Shown: positions 12,104-52,486 of the stretch, piece after piece | How the letters are laid out: every line of letters starts with the position of its first letter | Position numbering within the stretch: position 1 is the stretch's first letter | Virus record (IMG/VR): IMGVR_UViG_3300043418_000114 | Span: 186,001-250,000 of that record | Direction: 5' to 3' (one strand) | Length of the DNA: 64,000 bases | Program-made: the position numbers and the translations under genes | The notes under the pieces: generated by a model | Told to the model about the DNA's origin: nothing | The model's input: the letters and a program-made list of their open reading frames with translations, nothing else | Database searches by the model: none

Positions 12104-12395
12104 CTGTTTCTTTCTCTGTTGGCAAACAACCAAATACGATGATAGGAATAATTGTTACAAACGTAACTAAACTAAACCATGGGTTAATTCCTGCGTCACG
12201 GCAACGTCTAGCTGATGTGGCAAACATCAAATAGAATGATAGTATCAACGATACAAATGCCACGATGCTACCGATTACTCCTAGCAACACCGATAGCAAA
12301 ACAATAAACGGCATTACAGCTAGGTAACAAATAAGCAACACACCCCAGAATTCACTGCGGGTTGATCGACCGCTAAAGCTAAAATATTTTTCCAT
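12093..12395 (-). CDS. DUF805-family membrane protein
   Basis: 'YFSFSGRSTRSEFW...ARRCRDAG'. Confidence 0.8.
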   Translation of the reverse strand: MEKYFSFSGRSTRSEFWGVLLICYLAVMPFIVLLSVLLGVIGSIVAFVSLILSFYLMFATSARRCRDAGINPWFSLVTFVTIIPIIVFGCLPTEKETDGN

Positions 12396-12685
12396 TACAG
12401 TACTGCCATTCTGAATAGTGCTACACTGTCGATAGATACCAGCAACAGGTAATTTGAAAGCATGCCTAGACTCTTACGTGTCCATGCGGCCCATGCAAAG
12501 ATCGCACATTGCGAGATAAAGATGGGATACAGAATAAGAAAAGGTGGTGTTGGCACAGTTAACATCATAGTGATTGAGCATCCAATGCTCATGAACCATG
12601 CCAAGATTTCTAAGAAACATCTAAGAGGATTGCTTTTCCAATCCTCTTTAATCCAGTTGATTACGCCGTAAAATAATTCATTCAT
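12395..12685 (-). CDS. Hypothetical membrane protein
   Basis: Three hydrophobic segments. Confidence 0.55.
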   Translation of the reverse strand: MNELFYGVINWIKEDWKSNPLRCFLEILAWFMSIGCSITMMLTVPTPPFLILYPIFISQCAIFAWAAWTRKSLGMLSNYLLLVSIDSVALFRMAVL

Positions 12686-12978
12686 TGAGTACATGTCCGT
12701 GTGCGAGTTACTGTACCATTGGGTTGCATTGTTTCTACCCAAGGTGTGCAGTTTTCTTTTGATTGATAGATGATTGGTGGTTGTTGCTGTTGCACAATCA
12801 CTGGCTGTTGTTCAACAATCACAGTTCGTGGATGACTGAGTTCGTAACCAATCACACCTCCAATGATTGCTGGACCTACCCAGCCTCCGCGATAACCACC
12901 ATAGTAATGATGATGGTAATGTTGAGCAAATGCTGGCGCTGATGCTAGTAATGCTACTGCTAATAGAACTTTTTTCAT
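12682..12978 (-). CDS. Hypothetical exported protein (glycine-zipper-like)
   Basis: Signal peptide MKKVLLAVALLASAPAFA. Confidence 0.55.
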   Translation of the reverse strand: MKKVLLAVALLASAPAFAQHYHHHYYGGYRGGWVGPAIIGGVIGYELSHPRTVIVEQQPVIVQQQQPPIIYQSKENCTPWVETMQPNGTVTRTRTCTQ

Positions 12979-36273: not shown

Positions 36274-37695
36274 TTACGACAAGTCGTAACGTGTCTTCAT
36301 CACTGTCTTCAACATGACGGCTTCTGGTGTGAAGTCTTCCAAGTCGTTAGACAATACAGAAGTTGCTAGTGCTGGGCTAAAGCCTGACACTAGTGCAGTA
36401 CCACTCTTATCGAATGACACTGGTGTGTTACCGTAACTTGCGTTCAAGTTCCAGAAGACAACTTTTGGAAGTGCGTAGCCTGCGGCTTCGTACTTACGTG
36501 CGATCATTTGCATCGCGGTGTCGTCATGCTTAACACATTGGTTAAATTGCATGTCTGAGAAGATAACAAGAGTTTCAGGCATTTCTGCTTGTGGAACACT
36601 GTTTTCTGTCGCAGTCTTCAGGATCTTTTCAAACGCCTTGTGAAGGTCTGTACTCATATCCCAGTTAGACTTGACCATTTGGTCAATCTTTTGGTTGATG
36701 TTACCCTTTAGGTGCATCAATTCTGGCTTGCTTGAGAAGGTCAAGAAGGTATCTTTGAACTTACCCTTGTTCTTATCAGCAAAGTACAAACCTAGGCTAA
36801 CAGCAACTTCCATGCAAGACAGGTTGCTCTTAGAGCCATGACCACCTGCTGGACAAGACATTGAACCAGAAACGTCAACCAGAGGAAGAACGTTTGCATC
36901 GCCAACGTAGTTAGGCATTGCTTCCCATTGCTTTTGGATCAAGTCAGTTTCAGTCTTGTTAAACTGCATCCAACCACCAATACGACCCTTCAGTACGTCA
37001 TATGGGAACACTGCGCCTGCGTTAACCTTAACACCAGCTTCGCCCTTAACGAGCTTAGTTACATATTCAGCGTATGTAGTACCATGACGGCCAAACGCTT
37101 TCTTGTAACGTGCATGTGCCACTGAAGGAACATGTGAGTAGTTGATGTTATCCCAATTTTGGGCACACATTTGTGTTTCAACAACATTAGTAAGGCCGAC
37201 TAGGCTCTTACGATATTGTTTAGGGGTCATTCCGAAGAATTGACGGATTTCACGTGCTACTTCACCTTTACGTGGAGTCCACTTAGCCGCAAGACCGTTA
37301 CCTGCACGTAGTGCATCGCCGAGCATAGTGTATGCCTTGGCCTTCACAGGCTGAGTCTTAAACACTAGCAAGTCGTCGTAACGACCCAATTCTGGAATCT
37401 TAGCCATCAAACGCATTGCGTCTTCTGGGTTAGTCTTTTCCAAGTGAACGAGGATGTCTCGGAAGACTTGACGTTCACCTGAACCACCACGTGCATCACG
37501 TGCCCATTGAGCGATACGCAATGCAAGATCAGAGTTCTCTACATAAGCCGCTGTGAAAGCCGGCACGATGTTTTTACCACGGCTTGCACCGATGTTGTAA
37601 AACAAATCAACACATGCGTTAGCACTTGATTTGCGAGCCTTCATACCATTGGTGGTACGAGTTGATTGATTCTTAACTGCTTCTGCGAATTGCAT
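36274..37695 (-). CDS. DUF2828-like TROVE/Ro-related protein with C-terminal vWA (MIDAS) domain
   Basis: 'ARD.RGG.GER', 'G.YDDL', 'AAKW.PR', DVSGS MIDAS, 'SDMQF', 'VFWNL', 'VSGFS'. Confidence 0.8.
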   Translation of the reverse strand: MQFAEAVKNQSTRTTNGMKARKSSANACVDLFYNIGASRGKNIVPAFTAAYVENSDLALRIAQWARDARGGSGERQVFRDILVHLEKTNPEDAMRLMAKIPELGRYDDLLVFKTQPVKAKAYTMLGDALRAGNGLAAKWTPRKGEVAREIRQFFGMTPKQYRKSLVGLTNVVETQMCAQNWDNINYSHVPSVAHARYKKAFGRHGTTYAEYVTKLVKGEAGVKVNAGAVFPYDVLKGRIGGWMQFNKTETDLIQKQWEAMPNYVGDANVLPLVDVSGSMSCPAGGHGSKSNLSCMEVAVSLGLYFADKNKGKFKDTFLTFSSKPELMHLKGNINQKIDQMVKSNWDMSTDLHKAFEKILKTATENSVPQAEMPETLVIFSDMQFNQCVKHDDTAMQMIARKYEAAGYALPKVVFWNLNASYGNTPVSFDKSGTALVSGFSPALATSVLSNDLEDFTPEAVMLKTVMKTRYDLS

Positions 37696-38307: not shown

Positions 38308-39441
38308 CTATCGTAAATTAATTTTTACGTTAGGGTCTAATGTGATGCTAGACCAATTCTTGTTGAAATTGCCCCATATATCTTTCTCATTCTTGTAATC
38401 AGAAAGCAATGATAGCAATTGTGGATTGAATCGCTCAACTATCTTACGTTGAATAAGACCTGTTGTGGAATTCAGGGTGATATCCTCTACTGACATTCTA
38501 TGAATCGTTTGAGGGATTCGTATGTCTGCGAAAGGACTAAAAGTCATGTTGTTGTCAATGTGCCAATACTGATGATCATAAAAAATTGTTGAGTATAAAA
38601 ACTTCATCAACTGTTCTTGGTCGTAGTATTCTTCCATTGAATCTTTGTACTTGGCTACAACATTGGGACGCTTCAAAAACCAATAAAGATAATCAGTTTC
38701 TTTAGCTAGTTCGTCAATGTGTTTGCCTTGATAGTTTGCCAATGCGTTGATTGCTTCGCCGTCACGGTACTGATATGTCTCTGCATAGAAGCCAGTTGCA
38801 TACCAATTTAATTCCGTAAATGCACTTGATACATCATATCCCCAGTGTTTACTGGATACAAAGTCTACCAAGTCACTATCGTACTCTCTAACTCTGCCCA
38901 AAAACTTATGTAACGTATCGTCACCTTGTTTAGGCACATATGCTGTTAGAGTATAGTCTTTTGTGTAGCTGTCTAGTACAGCCCATGTTGTTAGGGTATC
39001 CAGTCCTGCTGAATACAACACATTCATGCGTTCAATATTATTGTACTTGTAGAAGTTTCGTGTGTTTTCTAACAATATATCGCCGATGATAATCGACGAC
39101 TCTTCCAATGACAGTAGGGTATCATTGGGAATTTTAGGTTCATTGTATGTAACAATGCCGTAGCCTTCAGTGGCTAGGTTTGTTTGTTCACCATTGCGTT
39201 CATATAATGGAAAACCTCTGAGAACTGGGTGATACACTTTTTCGTCATGTATCACGCACCATTTCCCAGCTGGCTGATAGCCATCAAGTATTTCTAGTAG
39301 CGTATCTGCTAGAGTACAATCTACGCTATAACCCTTATACCAGATGTTATCTTTTTGTTTCCAGCCGCCATCTAAAAACAGGCGATCTGAAACTTTGTTC
39401 ATCGCCTGTATTGGACAATTGGATCCGATGTAGAAAAACAT
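38308..39441 (-). CDS. Asparagine-synthase-like (PP-loop) protein
   Basis: 'VLYSAGLD' PP-loop-like motif and 'SPF.D'. Confidence 0.5.
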   Translation of the reverse strand: MFFYIGSNCPIQAMNKVSDRLFLDGGWKQKDNIWYKGYSVDCTLADTLLEILDGYQPAGKWCVIHDEKVYHPVLRGFPLYERNGEQTNLATEGYGIVTYNEPKIPNDTLLSLEESSIIIGDILLENTRNFYKYNNIERMNVLYSAGLDTLTTWAVLDSYTKDYTLTAYVPKQGDDTLHKFLGRVREYDSDLVDFVSSKHWGYDVSSAFTELNWYATGFYAETYQYRDGEAINALANYQGKHIDELAKETDYLYWFLKRPNVVAKYKDSMEEYYDQEQLMKFLYSTIFYDHQYWHIDNNMTFSPFADIRIPQTIHRMSVEDITLNSTTGLIQRKIVERFNPQLLSLLSDYKNEKDIWGNFNKNWSSITLDPNVKINLR

Positions 39442-39665
39442 TATCGCTTGTTGCCGATGCGCTTTAGATAATCACGGCCGACTAGGCCCTTTTCGATTTC
39501 TTGCAATGCAGTAACAAGATGGCCTGCTTTTGTTGCTAGTTTTGGTCGATGACCACGGGATAATTCACGAGTACGTTGACTTGCGATTAGAATCAAATCA
39601 TATCGATTGCCAACTGCATTAACTGCATCTTCGCTAGTATAGCGAACTCTACTTTCTGTCGTCAT
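39441..39665 (-). CDS. rpoZ: RNA polymerase omega subunit
   Basis: 'T.EDAV..VGNRYDLILIASQR.REL..G..P.......VTALQEI..G'. Confidence 0.88.
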   Translation of the reverse strand: MTTESRVRYTSEDAVNAVGNRYDLILIASQRTRELSRGHRPKLATKAGHLVTALQEIEKGLVGRDYLKRIGNKR

Positions 39666-39694
39666 TTTTTACCTTTTAAGGTTGTTAATAAACA

Positions 39695-39770
39695 TGGAGC
39701 GGGAAAAGGGGCTCGAACCCTCGACCTATACCTTGGCAAGGTATCGCTCTACCAACTGAGCTATTCCCGC
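39695..39770 (-). tRNA. tRNA-Gly(GCC)
   Basis: Cloverleaf; loop TTGCCAA; CCA. Confidence 0.92.
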
Positions 39771-39776
39771 ATGTTC

Positions 39777-39851
39777 TGGTACATCGACACGGTTTCGAAC
39801 CGCGGACCCTCTCCGTGTAAAGGAGACGCTCTACCCCTGAGCTATCGATGC
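39777..39851 (-). tRNA. tRNA-Val(TAC)
   Basis: Loop TTTACAC; CCA. Confidence 0.9.
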
Positions 39852-39862
39852 ATATATTCTAT

Positions 39863-40218
39863 TTAGCCACCCTGTTGGCTATCTTTAATTTCTGTTCCCC
39901 AGTCAATTTCCTTCTTGTCATCAGACATATCAGGTAATGGAGGTGGAACGTAACGTTCACGCTTTGGCTTTTCACCAAAGATTTTGTCCATGTTCTCACC
40001 GAATTCTGTAGGACTAATACTAAATGGACGAGGACGAGAACCCTTGCTCATTACTTAGATTCCTTACGTGAACCCTTCTGACGGGCATCGCTCTCTGCGA
40101 TTTGTGTAAAGCTACGCAAGAATGCGCCACGCTTGTGTGAATCTAGAATTGTTGCAGATGCTATCTTAACTAGCTTGCCTAGCTTCACTGCTTTTGGATC
40201 ATAACCTCTACATGTCAT
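39863..40218 (-). other. Two small hypothetical CDS (39863-40051; 40051-40218)
   Basis: SD sites; TAATG coupling. Confidence 0.55.
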
Positions 40219-40241
40219 ACTATTTTCCTTTTATGTTAAAT

Positions 40242-40319
40242 TGGTCTCGGTAGTAGGATTCGAACCTACGACCCTCTGCTCCCAAAGCAGATGCGCTAAC
40301 CAGACTGCGCTACACCGAG
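40242..40319 (-). tRNA. tRNA-Pro(TGG)
   Basis: Loop TTTGGGA; CCA. Confidence 0.92.
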
Positions 40320-40325
40320 ATTGTT

Positions 40326-40398
40326 TGGATGCGGGTGACAGATTCGAACTGCCGATGCTCCGAGCTTATGAGACTGGAGTGGTGACCACCCTACCCGC
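40326..40398 (-). tRNA. Atypical initiator-like tRNA-Met(CAT)
   Basis: C1:A72 mismatch; loop CTCATAA; shrunken D arm; CCA. Confidence 0.7.
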
Positions 40399-40410
40399 GT
40401 AAATCGTTTT

Positions 40411-40485
40411 TGGTGCGTGATAGAGGGATCGAACCTCTGACCTTCTCAATGTCACTGAGATATTCTACCGCTGAAATAATCACGC
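40411..40485 (-). tRNA. tRNA-Val(GAC)
   Basis: Loop GTGACAT; CCA. Confidence 0.85.
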
Positions 40486-40490
40486 ATTTT

Positions 40491-40610
40491 AACAGGTTCT
40501 CTTTTTTCGTGCTACCACTACACCAACGCGAAGACCAACTCGCGCCTGGGATTCGAACCCAGCCCCTCTTTTTTACAGAAAGATTATTAAGATTGCTGAA
40601 AAGAACCTAA
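40491..40610 (-). ncRNA. CAGCA-scaffold RNA copy 4, enclosing a circularly permuted tRNA-Tyr(GTA)-like domain
   Basis: TAGGTTCT-TTT-CAGCA, anticodon arm TCTTT-CTGTAAA-AAAGA, T arm, closed acceptor, D arm, AGAACCTG. Confidence 0.85.
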
Positions 40611-40620
40611 TGGTCAAACT

Positions 40621-40696
40621 TGGTGGAGGTGACAGGACTCGAACCCGCTACCTATTGCTTGCAAAGCAACCGCTCTCCCAGGTGAGCTACACCCCC
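40621..40696 (-). tRNA. tRNA-Ala(TGC)
   Basis: G3:U70; loop TTTGCAA; CCA. Confidence 0.92.
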
Positions 40697-40771
40697 GAAA
40701 TTTGTTACACACTACTTATCTCATTATACGCCATGTGTAAGGGCGAGGCTTCTAACTCTTTCGAGTTTTGT

Positions 40772-40848
40772 TGGTGCGGATGGTGGGACTCGAACCCACA
40801 AAATTTGGCTTCTAAGACCAACACGTATACCAATTCCATCACATCCGC
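40772..40848 (-). tRNA. tRNA-Leu(TAG), short variable loop
   Basis: Loop CTTAGAA; CCA. Confidence 0.88.
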
Positions 40849-40859
40849 GTAATTCTATT

Positions 40860-40937
40860 TATACTGAAACACACTAACCAAGTCTCCTAACCTGTATCAA
40901 CTGCCCCACTTGTGCAGTTATCAATGCGTTTTAGTAT
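40860..40937 (-). repeat. Long-stem element (family 2)
   Basis: TATACTAAAACGCATTG...TAGTGTGTTTCAGTATA. Confidence 0.65.
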
Positions 40938-41118
40938 AAAGGCTATCAGAGGCTTGCCATCGCCCTTAGGTTATACTGATATTACTCGTTGAAATATACC
41001 GAAGTATAGAGTTGGATTCAACAAGACCCTACTACTCACCTAAACTCATGTAGTCTGTAACGCATCATCATGAAGGGTCCAGCGACCTCTATCGTTACAG
41101 CATCTGGTTACATTCTTT

Positions 41119-41200
41119 CTATACTGAAACACACTGACTCTCCAGTATTTCTACTTTCGCCGAGTTTGACCGCGTAGTCGTGCAATGTGTTTTAGTATAG
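41119..41200 (-). repeat. Long-stem element (family 2)
   Basis: CTATACTAAAACACATTG...CAGTGTGTTTCAGTATAG. Confidence 0.65.
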
Positions 41201-42079
41201 TGGAGCACTGAGAATACATGCTTACCGAGTAACACCTCAGACATTATTACAATCCTTGCGAGACTGCTTTCTTCTGACTTCCACTGCAACCTCTTGCGAG
41301 TATCACAGTCTGTTACCAACATCGCCGTTTTAAGTCAGGCATTAGACTTGACGCTGTATGCTATTCTACGCTTTCTATCCCGTTGACCTTTAGAGCCATT
41401 CACTACCGCTAAGTAGTTACGAAACTTCCTGCATAAACAGATTTCACCTTGCGAGTTACGTCTGACTGGATTATCTTGCGACTCCAGTATTAGATGCTTT
41501 TCACATACAACCGAGACAGACTTTGCTTTTTTAATCGATAGAAGGGATCGAACCTTCAGCCGACTGCTTGAAAATGCAGTTGATCTACCATTGATCTATA
41601 TCAACCTACTGTGATGTGCTGTCTCAGTTGCTTCATAATCTTTTGGACTACAAAATACAACACGCCACGTACCTTTTGTCTCGCGGACTACTCAGTCGTC
41701 TTTCACGATTAATGTCGGGTCTCGGCTTTCGCGTACCTCCATCAACCATTCAAACTGCATTACAACTCTTAGATGCGACTCCTCGAATCATAACACTACC
41801 CTTTCTCATACCAATTAACTGGACTGGTTTTGTCGTGAGGTCAGCACCACCTGTTACTCTCTAATGACTTGCGTTACCCTCGATATTATCTCAGGCGCTT
41901 AAGCCACTAATTCTTTCCACAACTTCCAGCGTCATTGTTATCACCACCGGTCTTATCAGTGATGAAACCCTCGCGGGTTTGAGCAGGCTTGCTTAGATGA
42001 ACTATTTCTAGCGCGGGTCTGTAGGAGACTACCGCTTTGGGCCGATCACTCGGCTTATTCTAATGAGGCTAAGCCCCCA
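41201..42079 (-). ncRNA. GOLLD-like giant structured RNA with an embedded tRNA-Glu-like domain
   Basis: About 880 nt without a credible ORF; many GCAA/GNRA-capped stems; ends GCATGTATTCTCAGTGCTCCA; tRNA-cluster context; cloverleaf at 41533-41605. Confidence 0.65.
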
Positions 42080-42083
42080 TAAA

Positions 42084-42200
42084 TTCTTATACTCGCATAC
42101 ACTTGCAATATTGAAATTGCCTACCGGAAGGATATCTCACATCCAGCTGTGTCCGCTCACATCCGTATGGCCTATACGTTTATGTATGCGAGTATAAGAA
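42084..42200 (-). repeat. Long-stem element (family 2-like)
   Basis: 17-bp perfect stem TTCTTATACTCGCATAC / GTATGCGAGTATAAGAA. Confidence 0.6.
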
Positions 42201-42204
42201 CTAC

Positions 42205-42309
42205 TTTCTTAACATTGTTGAACATACTAGTGCATTTCCAAATTATGCTACTCCTCATCAGGGATGGAATCGAACCAACATCCCTAATACATTCAACAAT
42301 GCTAAGAAA
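42205..42309 (-). ncRNA. YrlA-topology tRNA-mimic RNA
   Basis: About 25-bp stem enclosing T loop TTCGATT, a short closed acceptor hairpin, then D arm TAGCATAATTTGGAAATGC. Confidence 0.6.
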
Positions 42310-42326
42310 ATTCTTAGCAATAATTT

Positions 42327-42394
42327 TTTAAAGAACATCACTGATTTCTCAGTGTCAATACAAGTATTGTATAAGGTTTTTAATTCACTGTCAA
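42327..42394 (-). promoter_or_regulatory. sigma70 promoter with boxB-like hairpin and boxA-like element
   Basis: TTGACA-N17-TACAAT; CACTGA-GAAA-TCAGTG; TGTTCTTTAAAA. Confidence 0.7.
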
Positions 42395-42424
42395 CAACTT
42401 TTTTAAGATTGTTAACCATTTTAT

Positions 42425-42500
42425 TGGAGCGGGAGGCGGGAGTCGAACCCGTCTATTTCAGTTTGGAAGACTAACGTGTAACCACAAACACTTCACCCGC
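42425..42500 (-). tRNA. tRNA-Gly(TCC)
   Basis: Loop CTTCCAA; U73; CCA. Confidence 0.88.
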
Positions 42501-42512
42501 ATAAATAACTTT

Positions 42513-42865
42513 ATGCATATCTATGACGCTATCACAAACTCTGGATTACACATCCACTTGTCCATGAGCGCCGATAATACATTTTACATTCTAGTATACG
42601 ACATTGATAACTTCATGTTAACTATGAAATTTTTCAACAATGTAGATACTGCAATGCAATTTATCCATTCACTATGAGTAGCCCAACAGATTACGAAATC
42701 TTATATAGATTAAACACTAGTCCATATGCAGAGACTAAGAGTTGGGTACTGCCTAATACATTCAAAGCAATGTTCTCAAATGAGAACTTACCTGAATTTG
42801 TTATTGATGAACTATTAAAGAAACAGACGTTTAAATTAGACGATCAGTTTCCTCAATACAAATAA
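42513..42865 (+). other. Two small coupled CDS (42513-42677, 42674-42865) antisense to the tRNA array
   Basis: ATAAATA upstream; ATGA overlap. Confidence 0.5.
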
Positions 42866-42867
42866 TC

Positions 42868-42943
42868 TGGCATCCCGGGAGGGATTTGAACCCCCAACTT
42901 ACGGTTTTGGAGACCGTTGCTCTGCCAATTGAACTACCGAGAT
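42868..42943 (-). tRNA. tRNA-Trp(CCA)
   Basis: Loop CTCCAAA; G73; CCA. Confidence 0.9.
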
Positions 42944-42949
42944 ATATAA

Positions 42950-43010
42950 AACAGGATGCTTATTTTTCAATTAAAAGTTGAATTATAAGATGTTGCTGGA
43001 CGCATCCTAA
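42950..43010 (-). ncRNA. CAGCA-scaffold RNA copy 5, with a bare Lys(TTT) anticodon stem-loop
   Basis: TAGGATGC-GTC-CAGCA...TTCAA-CTTTTAA-TTGAA...GCATCCTG. Confidence 0.85.
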
Positions 43011-43014
43011 AACT

Positions 43015-43104
43015 TGGCGGAAACGGTGAGATTCGAACTCACGGACCCTTTGAAAGATCGCCGGTTTTCAAGACCGGAGCCATAGACCACTCGACCACGT
43101 TTCC
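43015..43104 (-). tRNA. tRNA-Ser(TGA)
   Basis: Loop CTTGAAA; long V arm; G73; CCA. Confidence 0.92.
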
Positions 43105-43117
43105 ATTAAAATATTTA

Positions 43118-43202
43118 TACCATATGTAAACACACTAGCGTTTTTCACTAAACTACAACTTGACTGGACTTGACCAGTGACTCTATTGTGCTTGCATATG
43201 GT
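43118..43202 (-). repeat. Long-stem element (family 2)
   Basis: ACCATATGCAAGCACAATAG...CTAGTGTGTTTACATATGGT. Confidence 0.65.
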
Positions 43203-43315
43203 GACAGTTTAGTCCGATAACTGCCAAGAGTTGTGGTGATCCGGCACACCTTTTATGTATAAGTTGACTACAAGAGGCTTATACACTAGGGCCTTCACGT
43301 TGCCCTATTTTTTAA

Positions 43316-43442
43316 TACCATATAGAAACACACTGTCGTTTCTCTTTCCAGTCTAGACAACCTCGCTTACGAAGCACGATTATATCACAGGATTACGCAT
43401 CCTGCTCGTCACTGTACTCAAGCAATGTGTTTTTATATGGTA
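43316..43442 (-). repeat. Long-stem element (family 2)
   Basis: TACCATATAAAAACACATTG...CAGTGTGTTTCTATATGGTA; overlaps the CCA of tRNA-Lys. Confidence 0.65.
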
Positions 43443-43512
43443 GGGGCACAGGGAATCGAACCCTGATAGACCGGTTAAAAGCCGGATATTCTAGCCGTTG
43501 AATTATACCCCC
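43438..43512 (-). tRNA. tRNA-Lys(TTT)
   Basis: Loop CTTTTAA; CCA. Confidence 0.9.
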
Positions 43513-43515
43513 ATA

Positions 43516-43590
43516 TGGTCCCAGTGCTGAGATTCGAACTCAGTTCTCTCGGCTTAAGAGGCCGGACTTCACCTTCAAAGTTTCTCTGGG
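43516..43590 (-). tRNA. tRNA-Lys(CTT)
   Basis: Loop CTCTTAA; CCA; imperfect acceptor stem. Confidence 0.75.
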
Positions 43591-43689
43591 ATGGATCGTA
43601 AGAAATTTTCTTTTACGTGCCATCTGAGACCATACGGGGGTCAAAGATGACACTATCGTTTACCTGAACGTTTCATGTCATTTACCTTT

Positions 43690-44046
43690 TTAAGATTTAA
43701 GTGCTTTTAAAATATTATCCCAAGATTCAGTTGGATTATGACCTTGATCTAGCAAGGCAACATAAGTCTTAACTGCATCTTCTGGAATCTTGAAATAGAT
43801 GTTTGCGTAGGTGCAGTCGAATGAATCATCTTCATCACGAACGTACCATGGATGACTTGACATTTCATCAAATACATCTTCATAGTCTTCACGATTGCCA
43901 CCACCATTACGTGTGTGAACAACAATGTGACCATCTTCTACATAAACATCACGAAAGCGACCGAAGTCACCTTTTGTTTTATCTAACAGACTCAGGAGTT
44001 GATCCGAGTTAGGGTTAGTGCCAAACATCATGTTATACAAACTCAT
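43690..44046 (-). CDS. Hypothetical phage protein
   Basis: AAGGAG SD; 'GRFRD...HTRNGGGNREDY...DD.FDCTYA'. Confidence 0.65.
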   Translation of the reverse strand: MSLYNMMFGTNPNSDQLLSLLDKTKGDFGRFRDVYVEDGHIVVHTRNGGGNREDYEDVFDEMSSHPWYVRDEDDSFDCTYANIYFKIPEDAVKTYVALLDQGHNPTESWDNILKALKS

Positions 44047-44144
44047 TTCATTCTCCTTTGTTAATTTGTGGAAGTTCCGATAGCACCCATCGTCACTTAC
44101 AACCGTTGAGTAGCCTTGCATCAAAACAGTGCTACTATTTGCTC

Positions 44145-44219
44145 TGGAGGACAGGATAGGAATCAAACCTACCTAGAACGGATTTGCAATCCGCCACATA
44201 ATCGCTCTGTCACCTGTCC
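44145..44219 (-). tRNA. tRNA-Cys(GCA)
   Basis: Loop TTGCAAA; U73; CCA. Confidence 0.82.
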
Positions 44220-44228
44220 ATATTTTGT

Positions 44229-44316
44229 TGGCGGAGCATGTAGGAATCGAACCTACTCACCTCTTTCGAAATGATGGATTAGCAATCCATTGCCTTAACC
44301 GGTCGGCCAATGCTCC
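44229..44316 (-). tRNA. tRNA-Ser(GCT)
   Basis: Loop TTGCTAA; long V arm; CCA. Confidence 0.9.
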
Positions 44317-44331
44317 GTAAAATATCTGATT

Positions 44332-44500
44332 AAAAATCATAAAATAGTGTATTCAGCTGGCAGACTGCAACAAGATACTATCCTCTAATATATTAGTATC
44401 ACAGTGATATTAAGTTCCGGACCCTAATATCACCAAAGTCTGGCAAATAAGATATATAAATTCAAAGTTTATTAAATGAATACACTAATTTATGATTTTT
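44332..44500 (-). repeat. Long inverted-repeat-bounded element
   Basis: AAAAATCATAAATTAGTGTATTCA...TGAATACACTATTTTATGATTTTT. Confidence 0.6.
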
Positions 44501-44576
44501 GGTGGGCCCAACAGGACTCGAACCTGTGGCCAAGGAATTATGAGTTCCCTGCTCTAACCAACTGAGCTATAGGCCC
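44500..44576 (-). tRNA. tRNA(CAT), Ile2-like or Met
   Basis: GGGCCTA acceptor; loop CTCATAA; CCA. Confidence 0.85.
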
Positions 44577-44586
44577 ATAATCTAAA

Positions 44587-44766
44587 ACCATATTATAATA
44601 CACTCCCAATGCATGTCAAGCACTGTAACTTCATGGTACATCTTGAACCACAGTTTCGAACCTGTGAAATGTAGCACTATCTAGTATCAACTCTTTCGAA
44701 TTCAAAACATACTAGACCCGGCAAGCTGGGGCCTCTATATATGACAAGAGTATACTATAATATGGT
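44587..44766 (-). repeat. Long-stem element (family 2)
   Basis: ACCATATTATAGTATACTC...GAGTGTATTATAATATGGT; overlaps the CCA of tRNA-Leu. Confidence 0.6.
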
Positions 44767-44849
44767 GCGGGTGGCCGGAATCGAACCGGCACGGTGTCTC
44801 CACCGACGGATTTTAAGTCCGTTACGTCTACCTATTTCATCACACCCGC
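44763..44849 (-). tRNA. tRNA-Leu(TAA)
   Basis: Loop CTTAAAA; long V arm; CCA. Confidence 0.92.
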
Positions 44850-44856
44850 ATATTAC

Positions 44857-44933
44857 TGGCGCCTCGTAGGGGACTCGAACCCCTGGCCTCTTGCGTGACA
44901 GGCAAGCGATCTAACCAACTGAGCTAACGAAGC
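44857..44933 (-). tRNA. tRNA-Asp(GTC)
   Basis: Loop CTGTCAC; G73; CCA. Confidence 0.9.
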
Positions 44934-44938
44934 GTAAA

Positions 44939-45090
44939 TGGTGGGCTATCGCGGATTCAAACCACGCAACAACTCTATGTTGTAGAGTTAGGATTTCCAA
45001 TCACTCTAAAGCCTATAAATTCATCACCGTTGACGTTTTACCATTGAAAGACACGGTGCCATCTGTCTCAGTCGCATTACCTATCACCCC
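44939..45090 (-). ncRNA. About 150-nt RNA with a tRNA-like 3' end
   Basis: T-like arm CGTGG-TTTGAAT-CCGCG, then ATAGCCC-A-CCA; probable 5' partner GGGTGAT. Confidence 0.45.
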
Positions 45091-45139
45091 ATGCTCGGAT
45101 TCATAGATAGGCATTCTACTGATAATTCAATGTTTATCT

Positions 45140-45226
45140 TGGTGGATGCGGCTGGAGTTGAACCAGCAGTGCCTTTCGGGCGGCGGGTTTACAGCCCGCT
45201 GGGGTTACCAATTTTCCTACACATCC
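45140..45226 (-). tRNA. tRNA-Tyr(GTA)
   Basis: Loop CTGTAAA; V arm; CCA. Confidence 0.9.
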
Positions 45227-45227
45227 A

Positions 45228-45656
45228 TTATTTGTTTTTGCCACACCAAGTGTCAGTCTGTGAATGACAATTGGGACAGAGTAATCTTAAGTTTTTAAAC
45301 TTGTGATTGTGATTATCGCCGTCTATGTGATCTAAATGTAGAGAAATTTCTTTTCCCATCCATTCTTCTAATCCACACGACGAGCATTTGTTATCTAATA
45401 TTTTTTCTTTTAACAAACGCTTTTTCAGTTTTAGTGTTTGATATGTAGGATGCAATCCTTCTAGAATTTCATTCAACTCTATCTTCTTTGCACCACCACC
45501 TATCTTAAAATCTAAACCTAATCTTTTTGCTCTACGCCAAACTGTAACATCTGGCACATTAAAATAATGTGCTAACTTGCTCAAGACTGGCGTAATGTTA
45601 TACTGTTCTATCAATTCAGTATCTGTAAACTTTTCTGTACTATGTTTTTGTTTCAT
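45228..45656 (-). CDS. HNH endonuclease
   Basis: CxxC...LHLDHIDGD..N....NLRLLCPNCH. Confidence 0.88.
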   Translation of the reverse strand: MKQKHSTEKFTDTELIEQYNITPVLSKLAHYFNVPDVTVWRRAKRLGLDFKIGGGAKKIELNEILEGLHPTYQTLKLKKRLLKEKILDNKCSSCGLEEWMGKEISLHLDHIDGDNHNHKFKNLRLLCPNCHSQTDTWCGKNK

Positions 45657-45699
45657 ACAGTATTTATGAAAAGTTAGATATGAAATCTAAAAATAAACT

Positions 45700-45776
45700 T
45701 GGTGCCCCCAGCGGGACTCGAACCCGCAGAATCTTGATTTTGAGTCAAGCACGTATACCAATTCCATCACAAGGGC
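45700..45776 (-). tRNA. tRNA-Leu(CAA), short variable loop
   Basis: Loop CTCAAAA; CCA. Confidence 0.85.
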
Positions 45777-45904
45777 AAAAAGAAACATACTAGCGATCTA
45801 CTGTTGTTGTGATTGAACACAGGACTTAGTATAAGTCGTCCCAACTCCGCATCTTTTTAACACAAGTCCTGCGGTTGCTTGTGAGCTAATATATTTCAAA
45901 AACT

Positions 45905-45980
45905 TGGTACTCCGTATGGGAATCGAACCCATCTTACCAACGTGAAAGGCTGGTGTCCTAAACCGATAGACGAACGGAGC
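45905..45980 (-). tRNA. tRNA-Glu(TTC)
   Basis: Loop CTTTCAC; CCA. Confidence 0.9.
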
Positions 45981-45988
45981 ATAGTTAT

Positions 45989-46091
45989 TCACTATATGTA
46001 AACACAAAAGCAATACTAACCGGGCGGTCGATATCGGCGTTAGCCAAGTCACTTACCCAGACTTTCAAACTAATGTGCTTACATATAGTGA
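45989..46091 (-). repeat. Long-stem element (family 2)
   Basis: TCACTATATGTAAGCACA...TGTGTTTACATATAGTGA. Confidence 0.65.
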
Positions 46092-46123
46092 CTGCTTCAC
46101 AGCAGTGTATATGTTGGTTGTTT

Positions 46124-46192
46124 TTTTAAAGAACAGTGCTGATTTCTCAGCGTCAATACATGTATTGTATAACATGTTTGAATCATTGTCAA
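46124..46192 (-). promoter_or_regulatory. sigma70 promoter with boxB-like and boxA-like element
   Basis: TTGACA-N17-TACAAT; GCTGA-GAAA-TCAGC; TGTTCTTTAAAA. Confidence 0.7.
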
Positions 46193-46331
46193 ACTATTTT
46201 TAAGTATTTTAGATGGATTCGAACCATCGTTTCACTGGCGATTCCCACCATACAGTTACTATGACTTCACTGTGTGGGCCCTTGCGTCCTAAGCCCCTAG
46301 ACGATAAGACACTTAGAAATAGTCTGACAAA
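46185..46331 (-). ncRNA. tRNA-like RNA with extended acceptor stem and expanded anticodon domain
   Basis: About 25-bp terminal stem, D arm, T arm GATGG-TTCGAAT-CCATC; no CCA. Confidence 0.55.
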
Positions 46332-47310: not shown

Positions 47311-47871
47311 CTACGAAAGCAAGATTCTAGAATGCTTTGGCACACCTGCCATCAAGTATTCCATTTGGTCTGCAAGAATTGTTCGTTGTTGCAGAATCAT
47401 GTTTTCATAGTGGTTAGGTTCATAAGGAACATAAAGTAGTTCCATACGTGCTTCTTTCAAAGACTTATGACCCTTCTTAGAGTTACATTCCTTACATGCA
47501 GTAACTACGTTCATCCAAGTGTTGTCGCCGCCATGGTACCGAGGTACAATGTGGTCACGGCTTAGATTGTGATAGTTAGGGAAATGTCCACCACAGTATG
47601 CACAAACATACCGGTCACGACCAAACAATGTCTTGTTAGTCAATGCAACATGTGCGTGACGATGTGGGTTATAACCATGACCCTTGATAGCAATAATAGA
47701 AGGAGATTCTAGGTAGCTTAGTGATCCGTCACGTTGTACGCCACCACGATACTTCGCAACAATTTCACCCATAGACCATGCTACGGAGTCAGTTGCGTGA
47801 TATGCAATTGCGTCATCGTTTGAGATCCATTGCCGGGGAACTCCTGAAATATCTAGTGCTAGAACAGCCAT
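47311..47871 (-). CDS. HNH endonuclease (McrA-like)
   Basis: RD..VCAYCG...DHIVP...GG..TW.NVVTACKECN. Confidence 0.88.
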   Translation of the reverse strand: MAVLALDISGVPRQWISNDDAIAYHATDSVAWSMGEIVAKYRGGVQRDGSLSYLESPSIIAIKGHGYNPHRHAHVALTNKTLFGRDRYVCAYCGGHFPNYHNLSRDHIVPRYHGGDNTWMNVVTACKECNSKKGHKSLKEARMELLYVPYEPNHYENMILQQRTILADQMEYLMAGVPKHSRILLS

Positions 47872-48577: not shown

Positions 48578-48676
48578 TGGTGCCTCTGGCAGGACTCGAA
48601 CCTGCACACTGTGGCTTATCTAGCCACTGCTTTGGGGAGGTATAAGCTCCCTTCTTTACCATTAAGCTACAGAGGC
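48578..48676 (-). tRNA. tRNA with TAT anticodon (Ile AUA) and about 29-nt variable region
   Basis: GGGAG-CTTATAC-CTCCC; V hairpin GTGGCT-AGATA-AGCCAC; A73; CCA. Confidence 0.75.
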
Positions 48677-52409: not shown

Positions 52410-52486
52410 GGGGTGACCGGTGGGACTTGAACCCACAAAAACCTGAGTCACAGTCAGGGTCGTCTACCAATTCCGACACGGCCACA
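52410..52486 (-). tRNA. tRNA-His(GTG), no encoded CCA, extended flanking stem
   Basis: Loop CTGTGAC; C73; flanks TTTACTTAGG/CCTAAGTGAA pair. Confidence 0.8.

Follow-up and report, generated by a model that had tools for sequence, protein, structure and literature searches.

An embedded tRNA-like module with an eight-nucleotide anticodon loop in a phage GOLLD RNA

The 64,000-nucleotide (nt) stretch of DNA analysed here (the window; positions 186,001–250,000 of IMGVR_UViG_3300043418_000114, a 364,247-bp IMG/VR viral contig from an uncultured phage) almost certainly encodes a full-length GOLLD RNA of 879 nt at 41201–42079 on the minus strand, as judged by its Rfam match and by alignment with relatives. 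Inserted into the linker of this RNA, which would measure 806 nt without it, is a CCA-less tRNA cloverleaf with an 8-nt anticodon loop. The explanation we favour, with moderate confidence, is that this module is a tRNA mimic embedded in a self-assembled GOLLD cage. Coordinates are those of the window unless another locus is named, and all window features given lie on the minus strand.

Identity, extent and fold of the GOLLD RNA

The Rfam GOLLD model (RF02032) matched 41205–41668 over its full length (model positions 1–416 of 416) with 203.5 bits (E 5.5e-56; cmscan, Rfam 15) against a gathering score of 150 bits, which bears out the GOLLD label of the initial annotation. That annotation had proposed a search with both the GOLLD and the ROOL models of Rfam; ROOL gave no match in the window at its gathering score and none at E ≤ 1 within 40840–42430. 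As RF02032 covers only the conserved 3' half (464 nt here) and the hairpin that precedes the linker, the rest of the RNA was checked on relatives that we fetched. A scan of IMG/VR with a conserved motif returned 13 loci, all GOLLD by Rfam at 164–226 bits, and a clade motif scan gave 98 further stretches; loci are referred to by L numbers, the window's own locus being L008 (identical to window 38507–46308). Both ends of the RNA were set by alignment with 11, later 69, full-length relatives, among which homology begins at about 42079 (UGGGGGCUUAGCC) and stops at 41201 (...CAGUGCUCCA), and these ends are exactly the bounds first proposed. The abundance of GNRA-capped stems remarked on at that stage also held up, with seven such stems of at least 3 bp compared with 2.3 ± 1.5 in 500 dinucleotide shuffles, and the whole 879-nt RNA had a minimum free energy (MFE) z-score of −2.7.

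From its 5' end, the RNA comprises a 5' domain (41669–42079), which is the variable GOLLD half outside the Rfam model, a long pre-linker hairpin (41610–41668, aligned by cmscan to model positions 1–61), the tRNA-like domain, and a conserved 3' domain (41205–41531, model positions ~140–416). The 411-nt 5' domain yielded 100 consensus pairs with RNAalifold on 69 relatives, with 97.8% of cells paired and 87 pairs changed on both sides. The two helices of the pre-linker hairpin were 97.9% and 98.5% paired, with 15 pairs altered on both sides, and its internal loop contains the invariant GOLLD motif AGCAC together with the 5' strand of a helix described below as the clamp. A suggested link from the sequence CAGCA to a flanking scaffold family is unsupported, as CAGCA is part of this invariant motif. 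Across the 59 pairs tested in the conserved helices and pseudoknot, 94.3% of cells were paired, compared with 80.1% in shuffles and 31–47% when the strands were slid, and 47 of the 59 showed changes on both sides.

The clamp helix is formed by GAGACAG (41619–41625) and CUGUCUC (41513–41519), the latter directly after a conserved AAAAAAGCAAAGU tract. Its 7 bp were paired in 99.8% of cells in 82 sequences and four of the seven pairs had changed on both sides, one position occurring as UA in 50 sequences, GC in 16 and AU in 12. Because GAGACAG sits in the internal loop of the hairpin, the clamp is a pseudoknot that closes the linker around the module; it is absent from the Rfam structure-line annotation and probably equals the published P14, the same numbering placing the tRNA in 'J13/15' (PMC12990946). 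An enclosing helix of 12 bp had been proposed initially, and the underlying 12-nt complementarity (CAACUGAGACAG/CUGUCUCGGUUG, one G.U) does exist in the window; the inner 7 bp are the clamp, whereas the outer 5 bp (CAACU/GGUUG) had a paired fraction of 69%, which shuffled controls equalled, and did not covary; this part of the helix was rejected. The outer bases are engaged elsewhere, in the Rfam hairpin (GUUGU/GCAAC) and in the long-range Rfam pseudoknot, whose 5' strand GGUUGUAUGU (41503–41512) pairs with the 3' strand GCAUACAGCG (41352–41361). By cmscan and pair counts this pseudoknot was 89% paired, with nine of its ten pairs altered on both sides.

We also considered whether the region might not be one RNA, but an odd free-standing tRNA gene lying between unrelated structured spacers or a short protein-coding gene. 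Nothing speaks for this except that the Rfam model is confined to the 3' 464 nt. A single Rfam alignment runs from the hairpin through the tRNA into the 3' domain, pairing in the clamp helix and in the pseudoknot crosses the insert, and the 5' domain is collinear and covarying in the 69 relatives; the open reading frames (ORFs) are all short, none in the 1.6 kb around GOLLD exceeding 82 aa and none of at least 100 aa overlapping 41201–42079. This alternative is hardly credible, and by these sequence criteria the region is a single 879-nt structured RNA.

The embedded tRNA-like module and its relatives

The module occupies 41533–41605, in the linker between the pre-linker hairpin and a AAAGCAAAGUCU tract. 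It matched the Rfam tRNA model with 54.7 bits (E 5e-9) and was labelled 'tRNA-???' by ARAGORN, with a four-base anticodon uuuc, so that the CCA-less cloverleaf with an 8-nt loop that had been noted at this position is confirmed. The loop, AUUUUCAA (41568–41575), is closed by a perfect ACUGC/GCAGU stem. U8, G18G19 and a T-loop UUCGAUC stand at their canonical positions, and the acceptor stem has 7 bp, two of them G.U, followed by U and then AAAAAAGCAAAG with no CCA. The description 'tRNA-Glu-like' does not hold, having been based on the UUC of the loop alone: the body of the module is 63–66% identical to the tRNAs of the window, both Glu-UUC genes included, and 73–100% identical to other GOLLD linker tRNAs, which makes it a member of a GOLLD-specific tRNA lineage rather than a tRNA-Glu. 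Linker tRNAs are known from published GOLLD members (PMC12286853, PMC12990946, PMC6582537).

About 80 related phage GOLLDs, nearly every relative of the clade, have a homologous CCA-less cloverleaf in this position, and an insert is also present in the distant GOLLDs L004, L006, L010 and L013. Among 73 unique linkers the anticodon stem has 5 bp in all and the loop 7 nt in 71 and 8 nt in two. In the alignment of 82 sequences the D stem is 98.5% paired and the D, anticodon and T stems covary, as do the inner four acceptor pairs (90.4% paired); the outer three acceptor pairs are 76.5% paired, with compensation in one pair in 2 of the 82 sequences, a figure to be read with the search motif having fixed the 5' side for 77 of them. 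The flanks of the insert, GUAGGUU and the A-rich GCAAAGUCU, rank with the best-conserved positions of GOLLD. None of the 82 inserts ends in CCA. The D-loop GG and a GUUCRA T-loop are both kept in 70 of the 82; in a seven-member sub-lineage (L016, L029, L035, L042, L064, L068 and L086) the two are lost together while the stems are all kept, which is a coordinated loss of the tRNA elbow contact.

The anticodon varies. The 73 unique linkers have GUU (37), UUU (14), CUU (4), UCU (4) or UUC (2), plus singletons; one tRNA body carries GUU, UUU, CUU, UCU or UUC in different phages, and two near-identical GOLLD loci differ in having UGG or UGA. A search of all other columns in the 69 full-length GOLLDs gave no complementary partner for the three anticodon columns (best mutual information ~0.4), so that a kissing loop in cis is unsupported as the cause of this variation. 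The same anticodon is found on a free-standing tRNA in 10 of 13 arrays with at least 25 tRNAs; with this redundancy, and with all 20 amino acids covered by the window array without the module (ARAGORN), the idea that the module supplies a tRNA otherwise missing from the array was rejected. Two large arrays, L001 and L078, have an embedded GUU with no other tRNA-Asn within the fetched DNA. Given compensated stems, a retained site and conserved flanks, the linker tRNA is, as judged from this comparison, an old module under purifying selection, without CCA and with an anticodon that is free to vary.

These data also bear on the possibility that the module is a decaying tRNA pseudogene, carried neutrally in a permissive linker, and that the 8-nt loop is a sign of decay. 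The drift of the anticodon, the occurrence of 8-nt loops in two lineages (that of the window and that of L063), the seven relatives in which the D-loop GG and the T-loop consensus have gone together and the published view of the linker as the least conserved part of GOLLD (PMC12286853) would all fit. Neutral decay is nevertheless quite unlikely because every stem shows compensatory changes, the D stem and inner acceptor pairs being as well kept as described and the anticodon stem always having 5 bp; the presence of the insert at the same site in nearly all clade members and in four distant GOLLDs, and its conserved flanks, also argue against it.

The 8-nt loop itself was followed with a metagenome scan of the anticodon arm that allowed ATTTCAA or ATTTNCAA. 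Four other metagenome contigs were recovered, all with ATTTTCAA, and as these are independent the loop is not an assembly error. Two of them, L105 and L107, have the tRNA body of the window on scaffolds that are 90–91% identical, while L104 and L106 have another tRNA body, 86% identical and differing in a compensatory manner in its acceptor, D and T stems, on scaffolds that are 77% identical and belong to another part of the GOLLD tree. The scaffolds closest to that of the window (L094 and L005, 91–92%) have other arms with 7-nt loops. Being shared by two bodies on distant scaffolds, the 8-nt arm is either old or has been exchanged between GOLLD genes; the scan is uninformative as to how often it has been lost, since it required the arm itself. 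About 1% of the 1330 tRNAs called by ARAGORN in these arrays have an odd-length anticodon loop, free-standing genes among them, so an 8-nt loop per se is no sign of function. A second, independent 8-nt linker loop, CCUGUUAA, was seen in L063 (4846–5242) and is the common CUGUUAA loop with an extra C.

Could the module be a stored but real tRNA gene? It would then be excised by RNase P and a 3' nuclease, completed by the host CCA-adding enzyme and used in decoding, its 8-nt loop (UUUC, or UUC plus one base) reading a four-base codon such as GAAA or promoting +1 frameshifting, with the 7-bp clamp helix, which directly flanks the insert, holding the two halves of GOLLD together after excision. 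An 'inhibited storage' idea has been raised (PMC12990946), and the good cloverleaf score, the canonical tertiary positions and seven acceptor pairs in the window, the canonical loop architecture across the family, the persistence of the 8-nt arm in five contigs with two tRNA bodies on distant scaffolds, and the L001 and L078 arrays are in its favour. Yet CCA is encoded by none of the 82 inserts compared with 43 of 44 phage array tRNAs, the outer acceptor pairs appear not to be kept across the family, the anticodon switches while the body stays, and it is redundant in the window as it is in most large arrays; nor, as noted, does an odd-length loop by itself signify function. Of the features of a decoding tRNA the module has the cloverleaf, and neither a 7-nt loop with a conserved anticodon nor an encoded CCA. 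In Mycobacterium, the pseudo-tRNA of GOLLD was not detected as a separate RNA by Northern blot (PMC6582537). The missing CCA, the apparently unmaintained outer acceptor, the unconstrained and redundant anticodon and this negative Northern argue for tethering; an acceptor of 7 bp is a major determinant for RNase P and lets the enzyme cut a tRNA-like Y RNA (PMC4201824). We hold with some confidence that the module would not be released as a working tRNA. Release is unlikely, its residual share of probability coming from the conserved loop and elbow, the seven possible acceptor pairs and the retained 8-nt arm.

Proposed role of the module

By analogy with the 14-mer of env-38 and the 12-mer of Streptococcus agalactiae, the window GOLLD would self-assemble into a hollow homo-oligomeric shell in which the 5' domains cap, the 3' domains form rings and the linker points into the lumen, so that 12–14 tRNA-like modules would hang inside. 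Published work places the linker inside the cage, where it sometimes holds tRNAs, and describes it as the least conserved GOLLD part (PMC12286853). Cage assembly here is probable on the strength of these homologues. GOLLD would be co-transcribed with the tRNA array, and its 3' end would be made as for tRNAs, by cleavage at the next RNA and trimming back to CCA. The module would stay covalently embedded as a tethered tRNA mimic that engages tRNA-recognising factors rather than decoding, with the 8-nt loop a tolerated, inherited variant whose triplet is free of selection for decoding. A specific decoy or sequestering role is possible but doubtful.

Several observations weigh against this interpretation. 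Both the cage and the orientation of the linker are borrowed from homologues whose solved constructs had a disordered, tRNA-less linker. The module keeps more than a spacer would need (a 7-nt loop in 71 of 73 linkers, U33, A37-A38, and the D-loop GG with the T-loop in 70 of 82). With all 7 pairs available to the acceptor in the window, RNase P might cleave there. An identical 8-nt arm in two tRNA bodies on scaffolds only 77% identical hints at selection on the loop itself, and the analysis turned up no partner on which a mimic or decoy would act.

A further reading takes the 8-nt-loop module as more than a passive variant and the cage as a counter-defence device, in which 12–14 tethered anticodon arms would decoy or trap host tRNA-cleaving nucleases and the linker loop would vary through an arms race, or alternatively as a store of four-base-decoding tRNAs released late in infection. 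It draws on the arm ACUGC-AUUUUCAA-GCAGU, unchanged in the two bodies, and on the linker anticodons of the clade, which are mostly GUU, UUU/CUU, UCU and UUC (Asn, Lys, Arg and Glu). Anticodon nucleases (colicin E5 type, PrrC, colicin D and zymocin type) classically attack the tRNAs for these four amino acids. We regard this reading as improbable.

The 3' end, the tRNA array and known systems

The RNA ends in a covarying terminal hairpin, GCAU-GUAUUCUCA-GUGC, followed by U and CCA (41201–41221, with the CCA at 41203–41201), so that the 3' CCA noted initially is indeed present. A hairpin followed by N-CCA was found in 46 of 64 unique relatives (N being U in 32, G in 12 and A in 2), and the stem covaries (GCAU/GUGC, GGAU/GUCC). 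In five relatives the CCA is followed by AUAU and then directly by a tRNA, which is the spacing of tandem tRNAs in the window. The distant GOLLDs L002, L004, L006, L007, L010 and L013 differ from the clade of the window in having no N-CCA end, L004 having a T-run there. The loop of the terminal hairpin is L27, which has a central tertiary role in the published structure (PMC12286853); the published cryo-electron microscopy paper on GOLLD makes no mention of CCA or RNase P. On this sequence pattern, GOLLD in the clade of the window takes a tRNA slot in the array and ends in the manner of a tRNA.

ARAGORN called 45 tRNA-type genes in the window, all on the minus strand between 39.7 and 54.9 kb, and GOLLD thus sits within, and on the same strand as, an array of 44 tRNA genes besides its own module. 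Free-standing tRNAs include Glu-UUC (two), Lys-UUU and Asn-GUU (two), and CCA is encoded by 43 of the 44. The sole exception is the tRNA-His at 52410–52485, which ends in CCU. The nearest upstream promoter candidate on the GOLLD strand is sigma-70-like (42366–42394; TTGACA-17-TACAAT, 11/12 in a consensus scan). Two HNH endonuclease ORFs lie within the array (45228–45656 and 47311–47871), an association also seen in the GOLLD-bearing tRNA arrays of Mycobacterium (PMC6582537). Neither blastn with 41100–42300 nor tblastn with a 559-aa neighbouring protein gave a match among 50,697 phage records, which implies that the phage has no close cultured relative there. A clade-motif scan of 185,579 genomes found a true GOLLD on one contig of a metagenome-assembled genome; three further matches, including one in Mucilaginibacter glaciei, were rejected as chance 19-mers without GOLLD that give no host.

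Other tRNAs of these arrays are irregular. At 48578–48676 there is a tRNA with a long variable arm and the anticodon arm GGGAG-CUUAUAC-CUCCC, i.e. UAU, which recurs in relatives (L001 1853–1944, L002 358–451 and L005 1191–1282; lengths 92–99 nt); ARAGORN labels it Glu-ctc in the window and Ile-tat in the relatives, and it is unusual for an anticodon that reads AUA to stand on a class II (long-arm) body. The GOLLD-bearing array of L010 (IMGVR_UViG_3300048809_000064, 12292–12769) includes a CUA-anticodon tRNA, labelled 'Pyl', next to two tRNAs with irregular loops (uuua and ua), which suggests stop-codon suppression or recoding in that phage.

Further RNA-like elements adjoin GOLLD. One is repeated in three copies (41119–41200, 40859–40939 and 43318–43440), which flank GOLLD and tRNA-Lys, and in most related loci (e.g. 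L003, L014, L026 and L105) it comes straight after the CCA of GOLLD, the regular-expression census of conserved-stem elements being noisy and readable only as presence in most loci. It has a conserved closing stem of 15–19 bp (CUAUNCUAAAACACAUU ... AGUGUGUUUCAGNAUAG), covarying in its outer part, and a mismatch, A.C or C.A, that is fixed; the branched interior (40–90 nt) is hypervariable, and MFE z-scores are −4.0 to −6.0. It thus takes up the place of a tRNA, beginning right after the CCA of the preceding GOLLD or tRNA-Lys and stopping a few nt short of the next tRNA. The copies at 41119–41200 and 40859–40939 had no Rfam match at E ≤ 1 in the search of 40840–42430. The element may be what the initial annotation had called the scaffold family.

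Upstream, a 113-nt hairpin (42085–42197) with a perfect 19-bp closing stem (UUCUUAUACUCGCAUACAU/...), a four-branch interior and z = −6.6 lies between the first base of GOLLD and a weak Rfam match to YrlA (42202–42309; 33.5 bits where the gathering score is 69; E 5e-5 for the 1.6 kb searched). In the YrlA-like stretch a T-arm (GUUGG-UUCGAUU-CCAUC) and a hairpin resembling a D-arm accompany a long terminal stem; the stretch could instead be the remains of two tRNAs, an artefact of which Chen et al. have warned (PMC4201824). About 4.5 kb from it is a gene (36274–37695) for a 473-aa protein with DUF2828 and DUF7788 domains, a phrog_850 'RNA-binding protein' assignment and a DxSxS metal ion-dependent adhesion site (MIDAS) motif. 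The 13 best PDB matches to its AlphaFold model (predicted local distance difference test, pLDDT, 66) were all Ro60/TROVE structures, matched over the full length with E 6e-8 to 1e-4 and including Ro60 of Thermus phage phiLo and Rsr of D. radiodurans; NCBIfam and PDB sequence searches gave nothing for a Ro60-like identity, which only the fold search matched. On this predicted structure the protein folds like Ro60. It has homologues in 709 phage records, and a copy near GOLLD is also found in L003/L012 and in L106, of the other 8-nt-loop lineage. We speculate that the repeated element is a Y-RNA-like ligand of this protein.

The solved GOLLDs (env-38 14-mer, PDB 9MEE; Streptococcus agalactiae 12-mer, PDB 9L0R) have the same 3' domain and pseudoknot as the window GOLLD, which also shares with published members a 5' domain of about 400 nt, a variable linker, phage origin and tRNA neighbours (PMC12286853, PMC12990946); it differs in carrying a 73-nt tRNA-like module where the linker of the solved constructs is disordered. 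A dihedral homo-oligomeric nanocage is known for these two GOLLDs only (PMC12286853, PMC12990946). The GOLLDs of Mycobacterium and Mycolicibacterium (PMC6582537) likewise belong to large, horizontally transferred tRNA arrays with HNH genes and have a tRNA-like gene in the linker, an internal pseudo-tRNA or, according to PMC12990946, which cites Morgado 2020, a tRNA-Phe in J13/15. In contrast, the window represents another host clade and GC content (41% here), an anticodon other than Phe and an 8-nt loop, and its array is on a 364-kb phage contig rather than a bacterial chromosome. ROOL is also a large phage RNA found near tRNA islands and forms a cage with an internal linker (PMC12286853). Its sequence and fold are unrelated to the RNA described here.

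tRNA-shaped domains are built into other larger RNAs, such as tmRNA and the mascRNA end of MALAT1. Bacterial YrlA Y RNAs similarly have a tRNA-shaped domain that is recognised by tRNA enzymes, and that of M. smegmatis is cut by RNase P and receives CCA only thanks to its 7-bp acceptor (PMC4201824). The GOLLD module differs from all three in being a complete, non-permuted cloverleaf with an anticodon arm, and in being internal and clamped by a pseudoknot. Among tRNAs with one extra loop base are the frameshift suppressors sufD and sufB2 and yeast mitochondrial tRNA-Thr1; these are free, CCA-ended and aminoacylated, whereas the GOLLD module is embedded and CCA-less and the anticodon of its lineage is not conserved.

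Earlier publications already describe GOLLD, its occurrence alongside HNH genes in phage tRNA arrays, and tRNAs in its linker. The covariation of the clamp, the freely varying anticodon, the recurring 8-nt arm and the N-CCA end were not found in the literature searched, and the last two appear to be new; all four are modest additions that leave the classification unchanged. GOLLD is among the largest and best-structured RNAs of no known function, and the window adds a clean, full-length example from a jumbo phage, in which the module, its clamp, the 8-nt variant and the N-CCA end bear on what the cage does with tRNAs, be it storing, hiding or displaying them.

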